A stretch of DNA of 63,222 nucleotides, filler included, from Reticulomyxa filosa (lineage: Eukaryota; Protista; Foraminifera), in assembly GCA_000512085.1 (NCBI GenBank). It is 19 parts of 19 records of this genome, joined end to end, with 100 filler letters (N's around TTAATTAATTAA, not from the genome) between each part and the next. Parts side by side here need not be neighbours in the genome. Positions count along the whole stretch, not along the records: positions 37,688 to 40,169 come from ASPP01004633.1; 18 more parts are not named here. One strand, written 5' to 3'. Numbering within the stretch: position 1 is the first letter of the stretch; every line of letters starts with the position of its first letter. The translations under genes were made by a program, and so were the position numbers. Positions 2,549-40,269 of the stretch are shown here, piece after piece. Below the pieces are notes generated by a model. The model made no database searches. It saw only the letters and a program-made list of their open reading frames with translations, and was not told where the DNA came from.

Positions 2549-4260
2549 TTTAATTCTTTATGAAAAAATCATTGTCCCTTAACACAAAAAAAGCCTACAA
2601 CAAGAATTTGAATATTCTTACTCGGATTGTCTAGTCTTCTTACTGATAATGAGATACTGTTCCATTTGGACGCAGACCAATGGAAACAAAATCGTTTGAC
2701 ATGCTGTCGCTGTAATCGTTCTTCCGCTTTATGCTGTTGTCTCGATTTTTTTTTTGTTCTTCTGGATATTCATTGTTAAAACATGACCGATATGCAGCGA
2801 AGATTAACTCACACACATTTGTTTTTGAAGCTTCAATATAAATCAGAAAAACAAATTTTAGACGTTGTGTCTTTGTATTTTGCTATCTATGTAAAGAAAA
2901 TGAAATGTATCAGTCTTTTAGTTTGTTTGCTGTTCCACTCGCAATACTAAATTTTTCAATGATAAACGTGAAAAAATAAATTTTTGTGCATAAATTTCGT
3001 TAACAAAAATGATATTTTTTTGAACTGCAAATTCGATATATTTCATTATAAAAAGTGTTAGTAATGTGCCAAAATATTATAATTAAATTTCAAAGTTAAA
3101 TTTATTAAATAAAAATATCTCCAATTGTTGCCTAAGTCAAGGGCATTCTATTTATGTACATATTTTTTTTTTCATATAAATCATAATGATCATTCAACAG
3201 AAAATGTGCAAATATTTATACTATATTCATCTTACATGCATCACACTTTTTTAAAATACTCATTCTATTGATTTTACAAAAAGAAAATTGATTTTCAGTT
3301 TTATGACAATACTTTTTCATTGCAAGACAACAATACAACGAATTATTTGAAACAAGACAGCTTCAAAAACTTGTGTTGGATAGATGTAAATGAGTTGAAT
3401 TTCTGAAAGTGAAGTTTGTCATTAGATTGTACAGTTATTATATGAAAGAAGCTAGTCAAATGATAGTTGAAAACATGACAAGTCTTTATATTGCAATCAG
3501 TTATCGATGTTCAGATATAATAACAAATCTTTTCCTTTTCCTTTGTATCTCCATTGTCACATTTTGCTTGTCTGTGTTGTATGAATTATAAACATGGCGA
3601 TAATTGGTAAGAAAACAAAACTTGAAATCTTTTGGAATGATAGATCAAATGTAAGCACAATGTTAAATGTTGCTGGTGTTGTGTATTTTGAGAGATATGA
3701 ATGTAATTGTTGATGTACACAAGATAATCTTTATGTGTAGAAGTCGAGCAATTTTCAATTGCTTCCAATTTATTTTAGTCACTGGACCCCTTTTATACTA
3801 TAATTGCTTTGACGAATGATTTTATCAAAGTTAGATCAGAAAAGACATGATTTTATTTGCACAACCTCGAATTTACTTAATGGATGCACGATTTGATTAA
3901 TATGATATATTGCAGTATTCGTGGGAAAAAAAAAAGCGGGCAATAGAAAGACAAATAGAATATTCTAAACTATATGCTATTTAAACCACAACGACTCACA
4001 AAATTAAACATAATCAAATTGGTATTAACGTTCACCATCTCTCTCAAAAAAAAATAAAAAAAAATTAATCCATGTTCGAGCGAAGACAAAATTCACGCCA
4101 AAGTCTTGTTAAACGTGATGCATTTGTTAGATAGCATTTATACAAGATCAAGATCTCAACATTCTGTTTTACTGCCAAGCGTCGCAGCTGCGCTCCTTCA
4201 CTTATGGATAGCATTCCATTATTTTCAAATTCTGTTGAAGTTGAGGTATTTTGTTTATTT

Positions 4261-4851
4261 TTATTTTTTATTTTTTTTATTGAAAAACAAATCTCTCAAT
4301 AAAAACGATACAAAACTGTCAATGGCATGAACGAGATTGATCCAATCGTTTATGGCGACATCTTGTTTACTCTGTTGGGAAGGTTCGTTCGCTGGACTTT
4401 TTTCATCGTCATGCGATTTTTTTTTTTTGCGCACAGGTGGTATAAGTGTGGGTGGTACGTGCTTATTTTTCCCCAATTTTGCGCCAGATGCAGATGCATT
4501 GTTTTTCCACTTATTTTTGATTTTTTTGTGTTGATATAATAATTCATCGTCATCATCATCGTCATCATCATTATTGTTATCACTATCATTATCATCGTCA
4601 TCGTCATCGTCATCATCATCATTGTTTTCACTATCATCTTTGAGATAATGACTATCACTGTTTCCTTCCTCTCCTTCTTCTTTCTCTTCGCATTTTTTTG
4701 TTTTTTTAATATGCTTCTTCCGAGTACTTGCACGTTTGGTCTTACTGTCCCCTTTGCATTTTCCACCGAATTTTCCTCCATTGTGTTTCTCTTCGTCTTC
4801 ATGTTCGCATTCGGACTCATTGTGATCGCTACCTTCTTCTTCTTCTTCTTC
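4261..4851 (-). CDS. Low-complexity Lys/Asp-rich hypothetical protein fragment (contig edge)
   Basis: GAT/GAC-rich trinucleotide run at about 4546-4622 and basic NLS-like clusters. Confidence 0.3.
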   Translation of the reverse strand, partial: EEEEEEGSDHNESECEHEDEEKHNGGKFGGKCKGDSKTKRASTRKKHIKKTKKCEEKEEGEEGNSDSHYLKDDSENNDDDDDDDDDDNDSDNNNDDDDDDDDELLYQHKKIKNKWKNNASASGAKLGKNKHVPPTLIPPVRKKKKSHDDEKSPANEPSQQSKQDVAINDWINLVHAIDSFVSFLLRDLFFNKKNKK

Positions 4852-4951
4852 NNNNNNNNNNNNNNNNNNNNNNNNNNNNNNNNNNNNNNNNNNNNTTAAT
4901 TAATTAANNNNNNNNNNNNNNNNNNNNNNNNNNNNNNNNNNNNNNNNNNNN
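4852..4951. other. Artificial contig-joining linker (first of 18)
   Basis: 44 N + TTAATTAATTAA (stops in all six frames) + 44 N. Identical 100-bp linkers start at 4852, 22384, 25886, 28752, 30028, 31209, 32763, 34369, 37588, 40170, 41598, 43476, 52289, 53413, 54627, 56749, 59981 and 61833. Confidence 0.99.
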
Positions 4952-4993
<42 letters not shown>

Positions 4994-5014
4994 GTTGTAG
5001 GAATTGAAAATAAT

Positions 5015-6324
5015 TTGTATGAACACATGGCATGGATGTACCAATTGTATGGAAGCGCGTGGAATACGTTTGGAATAAAAAGCCTTTCGAAAATATGCTT
5101 TGAAATGATATTCCACAATTACGTGCATTTGTCGTCAGGGTCGATCAAATTATCCAAGTTGTCTTTTGCGGTTGTTCACTATGTAATGAACCACTACTCG
5201 TATAGCGAAGGAATGGGCTTGCTGCGCACTTTCAACGAAGAATGCTCGCGCATTCCCAATTCGCCCATGCACAAACATCACTTTGGAATCGAGTGCGATG
5301 AATATCTGTTGTTTTTGGAAATGAGACAAGCTTTGTATGATAATGACACGAAGAACGTCAATCGGTTGCTTTTGGAGTTGCAAAATGTGCTGCCTTGCAC
5401 GAATCTCACTACCGCGTTTGACTCTAGTCCTTCAGGCTGCAGCTACAACACGTCGTCTTCTTATTATCCCCATTTGATGTCTTTGTACGCTTTGCTCTAT
5501 CAGAAAAATAAGCAATTCACTCAGTCCTCATTTATTTTGCATCACTTGCTTGAACTCACTTCCAAAAAATATCAAATCGAAAGATTGGCTGTTCCTTATT
5601 TGTTGATATTGGTTGAAATACATTTAGTTAACCTTTAAAAAAAAAAAAAAAAAAAAAAATGTTAATAGAAATTTTATTTTATTTAATACTGTTATTGATT
5701 GTTATTGTGATTGCTTGTTTTCTTTTTTATTTGTTTGTCTATTTGTTTTTTTTGCAGGAGGCTCATGACAATATTAGCATCCCTCTTCGACTAGTTACCA
5801 ATGCTTTAGCGATTGCGGACAAATACCATTTGGTTGAATACAAAATCGATTGCGTTTTATTGTTGTGCGAAATTTATTTACTCCTCGATGATCCTTCTCA
5901 AGTTTTTGCGTTGTTACGCCCTTTGTTTCCTTCCATTGTTTCCATCAATTCCACTCATTCCATGGATACAAAACATTACACACGCATTACCAATGCTTAT
6001 TTTTATTTGGCCAAGGCTTGCTTAGCCTCACAACCTCAAAGTTTTCTTTTTTTTATCCGTTTGTATATTTTGCATATTGATGTTGTTGTTTTTTTTTTTA
6101 AATGTTGCTTGATAGATTGTGCTGACGCTGTCCAATACTTGCACTGTGCAAGAGTGTGGTGTGTGCATCACATGACTCATAACAAAGCCTTCCAGGTCAT
6201 GGGAACGGAATTACTCTCACAAATTCTTTATTATTTGGGTAGGGTCTATGAACATATGCAAGACTCTCTCAACTGTGAAATGTCTAATAAAAAATTGAAA
6301 CAATTACTCGATTCATCTCAGTGA
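5015..6324 (+). CDS. ANAPC5: Anaphase-promoting complex subunit 5, C-terminal TPR region (5' partial, multi-exon)
   Basis: Helical repeats align with the APC5 C-terminus: PLRLVTNALAIADKYHL ~ LPMLLQALALSKEYRL, AYFYLAKAC ~ AMFLVAKCQ, QILYYLGRVYEHM ~ DVVYFQARLYHTL. GT..AG intron at 5627-5757. Confidence 0.75.
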
Positions 6325-6477
6325 ATTTTTTTTTTTTGTGGGCAGTTTTTTAGTTTGTTTTTCTTTATTTACCTTAACTTTTCGTCATTTTGAAACAATT
6401 TCCTTCGTTAGTTAGTAGCAAAGTTTCAAGAAAGCATTAGCCAACTTTCATTGTTGATGCTGTGAATATTTTTAAAA

Positions 6478-9109
6478 ATGAAAAAACTGTCACACTTTCA
6501 AAATTTGTCAATAATCAACCATACAAAAAAAACGGAAGTAGAAGGAGATACAAGTTTTTTGAGATTAGTGGGATGGATAATAATGCTGAAGTTTGACCTT
6601 ATTCCAACGTATATTTTAGATTTATATCCTTCAACAGCATGTATAAGTGGTCCAGACTCAAATAATGACAGTCCTTCGATTTTAACGTTGCCGACAAAGT
6701 CACCGAAACAAGGTTTTGAAATTGGAAGTTTTCCAACAAATGAAAAGGAAGAAACGGACCAAACAGCAAACGAAGTGCAGATGATAGGGAGTTTGCACCG
6801 AGCAAAGACAGTACCAAGACAAAACCGCTCAAAGACAATAATGGACATCCTCCGCGACGACATAGACAACATATATATAAACACCTTGAGCAGCGATTTG
6901 AGATGTTTTTTGAAGACACATATTGTATTTACTTCCACTGAGTTCCAATTCTGACTATTCTAAAAATCTATTCAATCTTAAAAAAAAAAAAAAAAAAAGC
7001 AGACTTTTATTTTGTTAAATTTTGTATGATTATTTTGGGGGGGGGGGGACATGTGGAAAAAAAAAAAGTGTAATATTAGGAATACTGTATCAATTATACT
7101 TTGGCCCAATTCCACCCAATATCACCCCCACAGAATATGAAAAATGTGTATTGTATCGAGACAGTCTGAAGCGCCAAAAGATATTACAATGCTGTCATTA
7201 CTTGATAGACAAGTGTTGGAACATTGCTTTTCAGCATAGTGAGTCTTCTCAAGTTTGTGGCTTTGTAGCATACACACGTATAAATACAAACATGAACATA
7301 TACATATTGCACTTATCAAAATTGAAATGGAAAAAAAAAAAAAAAAAAAAGAAAGTAAATTTTAAGTTCGTTTTGTTTTTTTTTTTTTCAAAAAAAAAAA
7401 AAGAAATTGATGGAGTTTTTTTTAATGGAAATCCCCAACGGCAATGAAAAAGTGAATGAGTTAAAACGACTGATGGAACAACGGAATGACGCATCAAAAT
7501 TGGAAGTGAATAAAATAATCGAAATGGAATCTCATCGACAAATTGACGTGGATCGAGAATGGAAACGCCTGTCGCTAAACACCATCGACAAAACTTGTGC
7601 AGAAGAGAATAACGATTGCAAGTACATACAAATGGGCATTGTCATGAACACAAATATGATAATATAAGTCATTTTGAAAATCCAACTGACAATACCAACA
7701 ATAGTAATAATAATAATAATAATAATGAAAATAATACAATTGGTCTCATCCAATGGAAAAAACATATGCCAAAGATAGTAGAAATTGTCACGTTGATAAA
7801 TATTCAAAAAGGAGCTGTACCGATTCATGGGTTGGCCCATGCTTTGACTGCAAAACAGAGAATGCTGTTCCATTGTCTGTCCCCAATTGTCGTTTGTGTT
7901 AAGTCTTCCCTTTCACATTTGCTGACCCAACTCTTGTCAATTTATTGTGTCCTTTCAATGTTTGTCCAACCACTCCCTCCCCCCCCCTCCCCTCTTCTCA
8001 ACACAAATAAAGGAATACGTAAAAAATGCGGACAAACGTGGGGTTCAACCTTTATTCCATCATTTCAATGACACTGGGCTATGGGTCTCTTTGCAAATAT
8101 TGAGCGCGCCTGTCTTGGCCGACAGAATTGCCGTTCTCAAATACTTTGTTGCTCTCATGAATGTACTGTATGCTGTGATATTTATTTTATATTTCATTTG
8201 TTGCATTATTTTTTTCCCCCTCCCCCCCTTTTTCCTTTGCCCCCCCCCCTTAAATCAAATAAATCAAATACAAAATAGTATTTGATCGATCTTGGAAATC
8301 TTACCGGAGCTTACTGTATCTTTTGTGGGATAGAAAGCACACCTATTTATCGATTGCGAAAAACACGTGCAGTTTGTGATACATGCAGAGAGTGAGAGAG
8401 AGAGAGAGAGAGAAAGGAAAAAAAAACAACACATATATACACCGGCCAATTCATGCGCTCCGTACTATGTTATATATGCATGTATAGCACATACATATTA
8501 TATAATGTATACGTAGCAATTAATGCTAAAACAAAGTTTTAATATGTGCATATGTATGCACATATATTTATGTAGGGACTGACTCCAGAAGAAGAAGAAA
8601 TGTTAGAAAACACTAGAAATATGTTTTCGACTACAAATGGTTTTCAAAACATACGCAAAGAAATCCAGTGGCGATTGCAACACAAACTCCCTGTGTTGCC
8701 ACACATGGGCGTCTATTTCTCCGATTTGACGTGGCTGAAAGATCAGGGACCATATTTCTCTGGGCTTGGAGCAAAGTTTGATTTGATCAATTTGGCCTTT
8801 TGTACCAGTCTGTTTCAGCGATTAAAATTTATGCACATTGCACAAAAGGTTTTGAATTTACTCCATCTTTTCTTCTCTTTCTTTGTTTCTTTCTCTCTCT
8901 TATATACATACTTGCTTTTCTTACTTCAACTTGTGCAAGGTTCATTATTTAAAGACTTTTTTTTTCTCTTGGAAAAACAGAGCTATCAGAATGTGCAACT
9001 TTACGAAAGTACCGAACTGATCCACAAACTAGATGTCTCTCTGGCGATGCTTTTTAGTCTAAATCTAACAGATGAAGACTTATATTTACTTTCCAAACAA
9101 ATCGAATAA
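6478..9109 (+). CDS. Ras guanine-nucleotide exchange factor (REM + CDC25 domain), multi-exon
   Basis: REM-like CFLKTHIVFTS. CDC25 motifs FNDTGLWVSLQILSAPVLADRIAVLKYFVAL and LPVLPHMGVYFSDLTWL..DLINL, ending LYLLSKQIE. Confidence 0.85.
8387..8412 (+). repeat. (GA)n microsatellite, probably within a RasGEF intron
   Basis: agagagtgagagagagagagagagag. Confidence 0.8.
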
Positions 9110-36935: not shown

Positions 36936-37755
36936 TGCGAAGTTTTCTGTTTGTTCTTTATGTTTCAAGTCTTGCTCAATTTCCCATTATTAACAATATT
37001 CTTTGTACTTCGCCTTTTTCTTTTTTTTTCAACTTCTTATTTTTCTTTTTTATCACTTTTTGGCCTATCTTTCTATCTTACCAACGAGGCAATTGCAATC
37101 AAATTATTCTTTTTCTATACATTATTTTACATATTTTTTATATTTTTAAAAATGACAAATTAAAAAAAGATACTTAACTGGCAGGACAGCAACTTTATTT
37201 CAATATTTTTCCTTTTTTTTTTTCATTTTTATCTTTTTTTTCTTATTTTTTCCATTTATTTTTTTTTCTTCATTCATTTTATTTTTTTAAAATTTCTTTT
37301 CTAATCTTTTTCCCAAATTTTTTACCCACTTCTTCACATTATTTTTCCAATATTTTTTTCACAATATTTTTTTCCCAAATTTATTATAATACTACTATTT
37401 TTTTTAAAAAACAATCTTTTTCACTTTCTCTTGAGTCTTGAACGTCTGTCAAACAACAAATAACTTTTTTATTTTTTAAAGAAAAAAACAAATAAAAATA
37501 ATACATTGTTGAAAGTAAAACAGCTCCAATTTCCAATTTAATACTATTTTTTCTTGTGGTGTGATACAATATATTTTTAAAAAATTTNNNNNNNNNNNNN
37601 NNNNNNNNNNNNNNNNNNNNNNNNNNNNNNNTTAATTAATTAANNNNNNNNNNNNNNNNNNNNNNNNNNNNNNNNNNNNNNNNNNNNTTTTTTTTTTTTT
37701 TTTTTTCTCCTGTTTGTTTATTTGTTTGAAATTACGTACGTGTTGTTTGTCTCAG

Positions 37756-39371
37756 TGGTGCCTTGGTCTGCAGTCGCTGTTCAAAACATAAATTGATGAA
37801 CATGGAAGGCATAATGCAGAGAGCTTGTAAGCAATGCTAGTTGAGTACATTCCAATTCAAATATTAAGATATGTATATATGTATATATATGTTTGTGTGG
37901 AACACACAAAAGCACTAAAGCCAATGAGACGAAAAAAAAACAAATGAACGGGATGGAGAACATGGAACCGATAACAAGTGACGTGGACGAGAACGAGTCG
38001 TCGGACAATGAATACCAGACAGAAGAGAACACCTTGCATAAAATTGCTTGCTATGTGGATGTGGAGGTTGGAATAGAACATATATTTGATTCGTTTGGAC
38101 GCGGAGTGGGATCTTATGTTCTCGTCCCAAACCCACACAACAACGACTCTCAATATTGTGTTTCATTGGTCGTTCATACCAAACGTGGCCTTCAAACCTT
38201 TGCCATTGCTCTCGTCAATAAAAAAGAAGGCGTCTATTTTAGACTTTCAGTTTTGTTACATCCACATCTTCAATTCCACTTCCCTTCCCTCCTTGAGGGT
38301 CTCTTGTAATTTTGTTCTTTTTGTCCTGATATGTTTATATACCATTACACAATCCTTCTCATTCAAATGATAGTCCCACAAAAGCAAAGATTTTGCTGAT
38401 TTCAACCAAATGATTTTTTTTTTGAGTACGAAAGAAAACTTACTTTTTACTTATCCAATTCCACGAGTTCATGTCCAAGTTTAGTTTTATTTTGTTTTGT
38501 TTTTTTTAAAAAAAAAAAAAAATAATAACACAATAATAATAAATCAAATAAAAATGTAAAAAAAAAAAAGGACAAAACTGGCTTGTCGACATGCCTATCA
38601 TTATCGACTGGTGAAAGTGCAGCCAATTCTTCACCAACCGGAAATGATGGCGATATGCTCGTTGCATTGTTCGACTTTAAGGAGAGCAAAGAACGGGAAC
38701 TGGAATTTGAAATGGGGGACCAAATACGACTCATTCGAAAAGATAACAGTGGTTGGTGGTTGGGCAAATTGGATAAAACGGGAGACATTGGATGGTTTCC
38801 TTCCGAATTCACCGCGCCAATTACTGTCCCAACTTCCAATCGAAACTGTGCAAGCTTTACTTCGGAAATTCACTCTTGTGTCTCTCAGCAAGCTAGCTAC
38901 AGTAGCAGTAGCAGTACCAGCAACACCGCTCCTTCGCTCACCCTTGCTAGCCATTCGTCCCGTCCATCCGATCGCAATCCCAATCGTGATCTAAAAATAT
39001 TCAAATCCATTGAAAGTAATCTACTTTCTCCTTCCAGTGACCCACGTCATGGAGCTTCCACTTTCATTGACAGAAATTACTATGTTATTTCTTATCACGA
39101 TTTGAAAAATAAAAACTTTGATGAAACTATCGATAAACAACATCTCGAAGTTATCTATACAATATATATATATACATATATATATGTGTATATACATATT
39201 TGTTGTTCGTTCGTTTGTTGGTCTGTTTAGTTACGTTATTTTGAATACAACCGACAGATGTATTTGAGTGATTTGGAATTTCAAGAGCTATTCCAATGTT
39301 CACGACGAGAATTTAGCGCACTGCCTGTGTGGAGACAAAAGCAAAGAAAAAAGGCTCTGGAATTGTTTTGA
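37756..39371 (+). CDS. FYVE / SH2-like / SH3 / villin-headpiece adaptor (5' partial; exons 37756-37839, 37913-38249, 38374-38478, 38571-39149, 39258-39371)
   Basis: Four phase-compatible GT-AG introns give one open frame: GALVCSRCSKHKL..QRACKQCY (FYVE C-half); GSYVLVPNP..YCVSLVV..LQTFAI..GVYFR..DFADFNQMIFFL..LFTYPIP (SH2-like); VALFDFKESKERELEFEMGDQIRL..GWWLGK..GWFPSEF (SH3); HLEMYLSDLEFQELFQCSRREFSALPVWRQKQRKKALELF* (headpiece). Confidence 0.85.
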
Positions 39372-40269
39372 GATCTTTGTTTTTGTTTGTTTGTTTGTTT
39401 TTTCCGTTGAGCTTTTCCTCTTTTTTTTCTTTTTTTCCCCCCCCCCCCTCTCCTTGCACCTCTTCCCCATGGATATTTGTATAATTAGAATGCTTGGTTA
39501 TAATATTTTTAAATCTATTTTTCAATACCCATTGTTTTTATTTCCACCATAATTGTCCATCAGTTCATCTAATTGTTGCAGAAAAAACAAAAATGTGCTG
39601 TTTTTAAATTTCTTTTTACTACAGGTGGTATGAGTTGTCACCGCAATGACTGCTTGAACAATTGTATCAGGACATATTTATCACTAAACAGGAAGAAGTT
39701 ATCTTCAGTTTTTTTTAAACTAATGAAAATTTATAACTTTTTAAAAATATTGTTCGCCAAAAAGTGGATAGTAAATCCAAAAAGTCCTTTTCTTAGCGAA
39801 AATATCAAAATAGGTTATGAAGTGATCTATTTTCTTCACGAAAACATTCAAACCTAATTTTTTTAAAAATCAAATTTTTTTGCAACTTTTAATTTTTTTG
39901 ATTTTATTGCTTTTTTCATTCATTTACTTTTTAATGCTTTTTTTAGAGAAATAGTTATAGGACCCCGCTCCAAAGGACATAGCCCACCACAAGAACGTAA
40001 ATAAATTTATTGAAAAGTTGTAAAAAAAACAAATGATTTCTTAAATCTAACATAGAATAAAAGATCAATAAAAATTTGATAATTCTCAAGCAACTGAATG
40101 CAGCGAGAAATTTATTCCAACCGACTGTAAGAGCTGTTGCTGCGGAAGGAGACTGCACTAAATGTAATANNNNNNNNNNNNNNNNNNNNNNNNNNNNNNN
40201 NNNNNNNNNNNNNTTAATTAATTAANNNNNNNNNNNNNNNNNNNNNNNNNNNNNNNNNNNNNNNNNNNN

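Follow-up and report, generated by a model that had tools for sequence, protein, structure and literature searches.

A Reticulomyxa filosa contig with the C-terminal part of a foraminiferal multidomain protein that combines a FYVE finger, a predicted arginine-less SH2 fold, an SH3 domain and a villin headpiece

A small contig of the foraminiferan Reticulomyxa filosa raises the question of whether the string of domains that it encodes is a whole adaptor between endosomes and actin or the tail of a larger signaling protein. The window analyzed here is a stretch of 63,222 nucleotides composed of joined parts of assembly GCA_000512085.1, and its positions 37688-40169 are the entire 2482-bp contig ASPP01004633.1. 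GenBank holds the same locus as ETO31886.1 ("hypothetical protein RFI_05231, partial"; P0001 below), which is 99-100% identical exon by exon. An initial annotation had read five exons at this locus and proposed a scaffold coupling vesicles that carry phosphatidylinositol 3-phosphate (PI3P) to actin. The domain parts of that proposal are right, but the protein is probably incomplete; complete relatives carry a DH-PH module, so it is probably an FGD/frabin- or Vav-like Rho guanine nucleotide exchange factor (RhoGEF). The piece is likely to represent about 370 C-terminal residues of a member of a multidomain family that is so far restricted to foraminifera, with the order DH-PH-FYVE-acidic linker-SH2 fold-SH3(-SH3)-low-complexity linker-villin headpiece, and most likely acting as a Rho-GTPase activator.

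The gene model was built from direct reading of the sequence, a listing of open reading frames (ORFs), enumeration of splice sites and tblastn of ten relatives, all of which were concordant. Five exons on the plus strand (Table 1) give a single open frame of about 370 codons that closes with a TGA stop, and all four introns are GT-AG. The start at 37756 (the first base after the AG at 37754-55) and the end at 39371 given by the initial annotation are correct, and its phase-matched introns are supported by tblastn of each exon and by the intron positions and phases of a paralogue. Against orthologues, exon 1 is 67-78% identical and exon 3 45-48% identical (orthologues read KKKDFNDMNGLIAYIEKKEKLIFSYAIPRSEVE), while E-values range from 1e-17 to 1e-25 for exon 2 and from about 1e-20 to 1e-41 for exons 4 and 5. 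On these grounds the five-exon model, although predicted from sequence, is regarded as demonstrated.

The 5' edge of the contig bears directly on the question of completeness. A pyrimidine tract and an AG stand before exon 1, whose first base is the third of a Cys codon; therefore, the contig begins inside an intron, and since this intron splits the FYVE domain, upstream exons must exist. In the R. filosa paralogue on contig ASPP01025270.1 (L001) an intron interrupts the same codon in the same phase (…RRHHCRT-TG, intron, T-GGT…), and the exon 1 donor TA/GTTGAGTA is identical in the two loci. The exon 1/2 junction restores a Tyr codon (TA+C), in agreement with the RACK.CY of all orthologues. 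Homology to all 12 relatives found with the exon-2 translation ends at its residue 112, which is the donor TCA/GTTTTG at 38250, and the conserved continuation KSKDFADFNQMIFFLSTKENLLFTYPIPRVHVQ sits in exon 3 in another frame than the exon-2 ORF. Position 38374 is the sole in-phase acceptor downstream of the in-frame stops. L001 shares a phase-0 intron after FRL[ST] and an intron at LE/xYLSD in the headpiece, and a distant relative on a Tara metagenome scaffold (L002) shares the intron after FR in the SH2-like domain, which is the position of intron 2. Alternative in-phase donors for exon 3 at 38467 or 38473, that is, 2 or 4 codons earlier, affect only 2-4 non-conserved residues. Exon 5 aligns to residues 32-67 of villin HP67, and the L001 headpiece aligns to HP67 residues 23-67 without a gap across the junction. 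Orthologues read KLE-xYLS at the intron-4 junction, and this reading together with the HP67 spacing makes 39258 (acceptor 39256-57) the better start of exon 5.

Most of the domains are recognizable by sequence. The SH3 domain scores 57.5 bits with Pfam SH3_1 (cut-off 22.9; 1e-15), contains the ALFDF, GWWLG and GWFPSEF motifs and matches SH3 domains in the PDB down to 2.3e-11. At the extreme C-terminus, the villin headpiece covers positions 1-36 of the 36-position Pfam VHP profile with 59.5 bits (cut-off 27; 2.9e-16), and both the SH3 and the headpiece of the initial annotation lie above the Pfam cut-offs. Its PDB matches include advillin (1.2e-5), and in the alignment to HP67 the W, KK and LF are conserved; in villin, F-actin binding requires this Trp, the pair of lysines and the LF at the C-terminus, all of which are present here. 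The N-terminal part of the headpiece, encoded by exon 4, is conserved across the family, and this subdomain alone gave no match against the PDB. The acidic and Ser-rich linkers described earlier are present in exons 2 and 4, respectively. Word-based protein searches with exon 2 and exon 4 were empty, which is ascribed to the length window and the exact-word requirement of these searches and not to absence of relatives.

The FYVE finger is represented by its C-terminal half, as had been claimed. It aligns to positions 31-61 of the 67 positions of Pfam FYVE with 15.8 bits, below the cut-off of 27.8, as would be expected of half a domain. Its first base here is the third of the Cys codon in HHCRxC; a C-x2-C follows, and then RAC-x2-C as the RVC-like motif. 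The WxxD and RRHHCR motifs lie beyond the contig edge. The initial annotation had made its reading depend on an R(R/K)HHCR motif upstream; the motif is not on the contig, but the paralogue has it, as do all relatives whose sequence spans this part (WVPD…RRHHCRRCG), and the FYVE fingers of orthologues score 58-65 bits with Pfam.

All relatives have, ahead of the SH2-like domain, an acidic stretch in which a single aromatic residue is conserved. In the present copy this acidic linker (37980-38018) reads DNEYQTEE, compared with DDFEDEN or DEFQxES in relatives; it adjoins the N-terminal helix of the SH2 fold and lies outside the structure model. Between the SH2 fold and the remaining SH3 there are about 30 linker residues (38479-38660). 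Orthologues and the R. filosa paralogue have two SH3 domains, and the SH3 of the present copy is the counterpart of the second; the first has no counterpart here, and the length of intron 3 leaves no room for it.

The domain between the acidic linker and the SH3 domain is the part that sequence profiles do not reach. It comprises 113 residues (residues 51-163 of ETO31886.1, or P0001:51-163) encoded by exons 2 and 3. Pfam gave no match at E<=10 for either the exon-2 translation or P0001:51-163, hence no SH2 assignment at the gathering threshold; a sub-threshold match to SH2_1 appeared in a single one of 19 family members (0.0031). Neither phmmer with exon 2 nor hmmsearch with a family profile found an SH2 domain among all PDB sequences. 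The domain was modeled from an alignment of the 19 family sequences (alignment A1), the first row of which is P0001:51-163. AlphaFold2 on this alignment gave a model with a predicted local distance difference test score (pLDDT) of 91.7 and a predicted template modeling score of 0.85. The elements of the model follow one another as N-helix, βA, αA, βB, βC, βD, βE, βF, αB and βG, which is the order of the SH2 fold (a central antiparallel β-sheet between two helices), with helix αB at model residues 87-97. Exon 2 supplies the N-terminal helix, βA, αA, a GxGxG AB loop, βB (SYVLVP, 38112-38129), βC, βD and a βE that ends in FRLS.

Structural comparisons with this model agree. The top 50 Foldseek matches in the PDB are all SH2 domains (best E 2.9e-5; template modeling scores 0.63-0.67) and include the p120RasGAP C-SH2, Grb7/10/14, SOCS1/2, SHIP, SHP2, Src and Vav2. 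VIA-align, which is independent of Foldseek and covered 48,161 chains, placed 6wax, the p120RasGAP C-SH2, first (Z 12.6 over 98 residues at 2.3 Å); 58 chains reached Z>=8, and among the 50 matches listed (Z 8.7 to 12.6) all are SH2 domains, Spt6 and JAK included. In the ESM Atlas, its own single-sequence model and language-model features likewise led to SH2 clusters, with SH2D5 first and all matches SH2. The SH2-like fold of the initial annotation, for which a structure prediction had been named as the check, is thus upheld by the predicted models, and within the reach of prediction the SH2 fold is regarded as established.

The predicted fold lacks the arginine by which SH2 domains capture phosphotyrosine (pTyr). 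Strand βB is SYVLVP (model residues 32-37), and the family pattern is [ST]Y[VMLIF][LVI][VIL][PN] or GSY[VM][LV][VIL]P. The YVLVP reported earlier in place of the FLVR motif is found at 38115-38129, and none of the 19 members in alignment A1 has a basic residue in βB. The position of the FLVR arginine is occupied by Val, Ile or Leu and followed by a near-invariant Pro (P37), and a shift of the register by one or two positions does not bring in a basic residue; the register was set by the model strands and the conserved Gly before βB, not by residue-level superposition. In the first turn of αA, the site of the second phosphate-binding Arg, the present copy has I-E-H and the family mostly T-E-D, with Glu at the place of the αA arginine. 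The only invariant columns of the alignment are the three AB-loop glycines G27, G29 and G31 (F-G-x-G-x-G; 38097-38111), and R75, the Arg of FRL, is near-invariant. These glycines adjoin the place of the phosphate-binding residues in canonical SH2 domains.

The relatives define the full architecture. An exhaustive search of representative proteins with the exon-2 translation yielded the 12 relatives mentioned above, and eight further proteins, several of which derive from transcripts, came from a word search with P0006. No protein outside the family was found at E<=1e-3 among 1.84 billion representatives. All relatives whose organism is named by the source are foraminifera; they include the Ammonia sp. 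MMETSP1384 transcript P0014 (taxid 29189), R. filosa ETO08192.1 and EukProt proteins of Nonionella stella and Bolivina argentea. Pfam assigns RhoGEF(DH)-PH-FYVE-[SH2 fold]-SH3-SH3-VHP to P0004 and P0006, which are incomplete models, and to the complete transcript-derived P0014, P0016, P0018 and P0019. In a sister group, P0008 (B. argentea), P0011 and P0012 (N. stella), the order is DH-PH-FYVE-[SH2 fold]-SH3-SAM followed by a long tail, the latter elements replacing the second SH3 and the headpiece; the RhoGEF domain of P0011 and P0012 scores 89-103 bits. The 10-kb contig L001 carries DH exons (3418-4279) and PH exons (4498-4993), then FYVE, SH2-like, two SH3 and headpiece, all on one strand, and L002 (TARA_SAMEA6035044_METAG-scaffold_6494) has the same domain order at 2578-4894. 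The latter has fewer introns, with FYVE and headpiece unsplit and the SH2-like intron kept, and is an environmental relative, presumably a planktonic foraminiferan.

Since DH and PH stand N-terminal to FYVE in every complete relative (P0014, P0016, P0018, P0019, L001 and L002), the most likely reading is of an enzyme: a Rho-family GEF fitted with modules that target it to membranes and actin. The upstream exons of the present gene very probably encode a DH-PH module and the N-terminal half of FYVE, which would make the protein a Rho-family exchange factor. The architecture is present in both monothalamid and rotaliid foraminifera, and the family therefore predates their split; it looks restricted to the phylum within current sampling. 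The domain combination had been put forward as undescribed. None was met in the literature searched, but the combination is not unique to this gene, being that of a family across both groups of foraminifera.

Several points weigh against this reading. No DH or PH sequence is on the contig, which ends 68 nt upstream of exon 1, and the RhoGEF status of the present paralogue is therefore drawn from its relatives only. The SH2 assignment rests on predicted structures, the sequence profiles failing to reach the domain. The copy is divergent, with about 46% identity to orthologues in the SH2-like domain, and has lost its first SH3. Lastly, specificity for PI3P is not universal among the FYVE fingers of FGD-type GEFs.

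Two other accounts of the gene start from these same features. The present paralogue could lack a GEF module and be a FYVE-SH2like-SH3-headpiece adaptor in its own right, a passive tether between PI3P vesicles and actin, as the piece carries only these domains, one SH3 has already been lost relative to orthologues, which makes further domain loss conceivable, and the GenBank models of the R. filosa paralogues P0007 and P0002 start near the FYVE or SH2-like domain. These short models, however, are annotation artefacts: in L001 the DH and PH exons come immediately before, in the same orientation, and were called as separate genes. With DH-PH in all complete transcript-derived orthologues and a contig that opens in an intron within FYVE, a stand-alone adaptor is improbable. 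Less probable still, the locus could be a duplicate that is decaying or not expressed, its domain string having no current function; the R. filosa genome is highly repetitive. It is the most divergent member of the family found, lacks the first SH3 and lies on a tiny contig, but the frame is intact over five exons and some 370 codons, the four pairs of splice sites are all canonical and in phase, and the core residues of the SH3 and headpiece, the FYVE Cys ligands and the hydrophobic positions of the SH2 fold are kept. A DH-PH-containing exchange factor remains the preferred reading of the gene.

What the SH2 fold does within such a protein is a separate matter. Most likely, it would be a phospho-independent docking module or an intramolecular regulatory one. 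It could instead still read a phospho-ligand (pTyr, pSer/pThr or a phosphoinositide) through a non-canonical pocket formed, for example, by the GxGxG loop, the Arg of FRL and flanking Lys clusters, in which case the GEF would be recruited by phosphorylation or lipids. The invariance of G27, G29 and G31 and the near-invariance of R75 favor such a pocket, as does the best structural match, the p120RasGAP C-SH2, whose structure paper is titled as that of a 'FLVR-unique' SH2 domain (listed in PMC7530234). Against this, Arg, Lys and His are absent from βB and the first αA turn in all members of the alignment. SH2 domains without the FLVR arginine are rare: among human ones it is missing only from RIN2, TYK2 and SH2D5, the C-terminal SH2 of Spt6 is also without a canonical pocket, and in domains that lack the arginine pTyr binding via that residue is held to be impossible (PMC7530234). 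A phospho-reader is accordingly judged unlikely, and phospho-independent docking or regulation is preferred.

In the mechanism proposed here, the FYVE finger would place the protein on PI3P or other endomembranes and the villin headpiece is predicted to place it on F-actin. The SH3 domain is predicted to bind proline-rich partners; it and the arginine-less SH2 fold would serve to dock proteins or to regulate the molecule itself, and would not recognize phosphotyrosine by the canonical route. Membrane binding may be weakened by the acidic run that directly follows FYVE, in the manner of the polyD tail of Phafin2; this tail is reported to autoinhibit PI3P binding (PMC9324892), and the likeness of the acidic linker to it is an analogy only. 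The overall logic would be that of frabin/FGD4 (F-actin binding with DH-PH-FYVE) or of Vav (DH-PH-zinc finger with an SH2/SH3 cassette), built from different parts. A bolder idea, which is judged improbable, is that foraminifera possess their own ancient SH2-fold lineage, invisible to profiles, in which pTyr capture by arginine has been replaced by the invariant GxGxG AB loop and the near-invariant βE Arg, and which, as part of a RhoGEF, detects ligands of a new class or holds the acidic/aromatic linker in an autoinhibited state. If true, the range of non-Spt6 SH2 domains would come to include Rhizaria, and a new mode of SH2 recognition would be tied to pseudopodial actin control.

Known systems resemble the family in part, the nearest in function being frabin/FGD4, Vav and the DH-FYVE GEFs of Entamoeba. 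FGD family members and frabin (FGD4) share the DH-PH-FYVE core with the relatives of the present gene, and frabin also binds F-actin. In FGDs, however, a second PH follows FYVE where the foraminiferal family has the SH2 fold and SH3, and the actin-binding region of frabin is N-terminal and not a headpiece. The Entamoeba EhFP DH-FYVE GEFs also share the DH-PH-FYVE core, and EhFP10 is reported to connect a FYVE GEF to the actin/myosin machinery (PMC6396940). FGD-type GEFs are widespread, and Fort and Blangy, who noted how large the Dbl repertoire of R. filosa is and associated expansions of this kind with amoeboid form, do not describe the architecture of the present family (PMC5499878). The Vav family (DH-PH-C1-SH3-SH2-SH3; PMC5499878) likewise combines a GEF core with a zinc finger and SH2/SH3 cassette downstream of it, and Vav SH2 domains are among the structural matches of the SH2-fold domain. 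Unlike the foraminiferal domain, that of Vav keeps the FLVR arginine and binds pTyr; Vav proteins also differ in domain order, have a C1 instead of a FYVE zinc finger, and lack a headpiece.

Among SH2 domains, those of SH2D5, RIN2, TYK2/JAK, Spt6 (C-SH2) and p120RasGAP (C-SH2) resemble the present one in having the fold with the pTyr arginine missing or unused (PMC7530234), and the SH2D5 and RasGAP clusters are its nearest structural neighbors. These atypical domains are seen by sequence profiles, whereas the present domain is not; it differs further in the aliphatic residue and conserved Pro at the site, in the invariant GxGxG AB loop and in belonging to Rhizaria rather than Amorphea. The headpieces of villin, advillin, supervillin and dematin share with it the 36-residue C-terminal subdomain, matched over the full profile length at the extreme C-terminus, and the Trp, KK and LF. 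The present headpiece sits on a predicted signaling protein and not on gelsolin repeats, reads KKAL where others have KKEK, and its F-actin binding is predicted only. The closest resemblance is to the foraminiferal relatives, which share FYVE, acidic linker, SH2-fold domain, SH3 and headpiece and, in R. filosa, intron positions; the complete ones have an N-terminal DH-PH and two SH3, compared with one SH3 and a cut 5' end in the present copy.

The existing GenBank models at this locus and at the ASPP01025270.1 paralogue are wrong or fragmented, and the transcript-derived orthologues show how. ETO31886.1 has no functional annotation, and its exons 2, 3 and 4 are those of the present model. It omits the FYVE exon (37756-37839) and opens with 15 residues of read-through from intron 1 (ICIYVYICLCGTHKS; 37869-37913). 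It also uses the acceptor at 39229-30, 27 nt too far upstream, by which the nine residues LRYFEYNRQ (39231-39257) are inserted in the headpiece; the insertion is judged wrong because the relatives and the HP67 spacing contradict it. In L001, positions 3253-7244 hold one colinear DH-PH-FYVE-SH2like-SH3-SH3-VHP gene that is annotated as three genes. The third of these, ETO08192.1 ('intersectin-like protein'), reads through the FYVE intron (5330-5440) and is mis-spliced around the SH2-like domain.

Other models of the present gene were considered and rejected. When the exon-2 ORF was taken as the whole SH2-like domain (…FPSLLEGLL), single-sequence AlphaFold2 gave a poor all-β model (pLDDT 60) with weak immunoglobulin-like matches; the ORF was rejected as a whole domain because the homologues show that its last 19 codons are intron and occur in no relative. 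A PH-like fold, considered from this first poor model, was dropped after the alignment-based model. An alternative donor, GTAAGC at 37827, was set aside since with it the CKQC Zn ligands, which are conserved, and the CY junction of all relatives would be lost. A direct join of exon 2 to the SH3 region (38306 to an acceptor at 38616 or 38621), as well as several mini-exon options, is in phase and has no homology support.

Table 1. Features of the contig, in positions of the window
Feature	Position	Strand	Content
3' end of upstream intron	37688..37755	+	T19 run, pyrimidine-rich tract, acceptor AG 37754-55; contig edge cuts gene
Exon 1	37756..37839	+	C-terminal half of FYVE zinc finger, (C)GALVCSRCSKHKLMNMEGIMQRACKQC, then TA, which opens a Tyr codon
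Intron 1	37840..37912	+	73 nt, phase 2, GT..AG, with TA/TG microsatellite
Exon 2, first part	37913..38018	+	Linker, Lys-rich then acidic (…DVDENESSDNEYQ)
Exon 2, second part	38019..38249	+	N-terminal three quarters of predicted SH2-fold domain
Intron 2	38250..38373	+	124 nt, phase 0; first 57 nt prolong exon-2 ORF as VLLHPHLQFHFPSLLEGLL, non-coding
Exon 3	38374..38478	+	105 nt; C-terminal quarter of predicted SH2-fold domain, SHKSKDFADFNQMIFFLSTKENLLFTYPIPRVHVQ (βF, αB, βG)
Intron 3	38479..38570	+	92 nt, phase 0, A/T-rich
Exon 4	38571..39149	+	Short linker, SH3 (38661-38804), Ser-rich low-complexity linker (~38805-39080), headpiece N-terminal subdomain (…YYVISYHDLKNKNFDETIDKQHLE)
Intron 4	39150..39257	+	108 nt, phase 0, with TA microsatellite
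Exon 5	39258..39371	+	Villin-headpiece C-terminal subdomain, MYLSDLEFQELFQCSRREFSALPVWRQKQRKKALELF, plus TGA stop
3' untranslated region and intergenic AT-rich sequence	39372..40169		No tRNA, no Rfam family, no convincing ORF

The microsatellites of introns 1 (37869-37892) and 4 (39156-39199) are similar, with units ATATGTAT and TATACATA, and a like repeat occurs in L001 (5955-5990) in the intron after FRLT. Downstream of the gene, a short open frame on the plus strand (40076-40169; …LFQPTVRAVAAEGDCTKCN) leaves the contig at its 3' edge and is either the start of an exon of a neighboring gene or a chance frame.

SH2 domains outside Spt6 are usually treated as a feature of Amorphea and of phosphotyrosine signaling. 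The literature searched held nothing relevant on SH2 domains in Reticulomyxa, Foraminifera or Rhizaria. The locus is already known as an annotated hypothetical protein, and its parts are known types of domain; what is new, as far as can be told, is the combination, above all the conserved, profile-invisible SH2 fold without its arginine in a foraminiferal RhoGEF family. Conservation of this predicted fold across monothalamid and rotaliid foraminifera suggests that the distribution of the SH2 fold and its uses other than pTyr binding have been under-counted, and the family offers a concrete protein on which to test this. A link to organelle transport in reticulopodia, as raised in the initial annotation, is speculation. 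The family unites a predicted Rho activator, a phosphoinositide finger and an F-actin headpiece, and could plausibly regulate the membrane and actin dynamics that underlie reticulopodia, for which molecular handles are almost wholly lacking.

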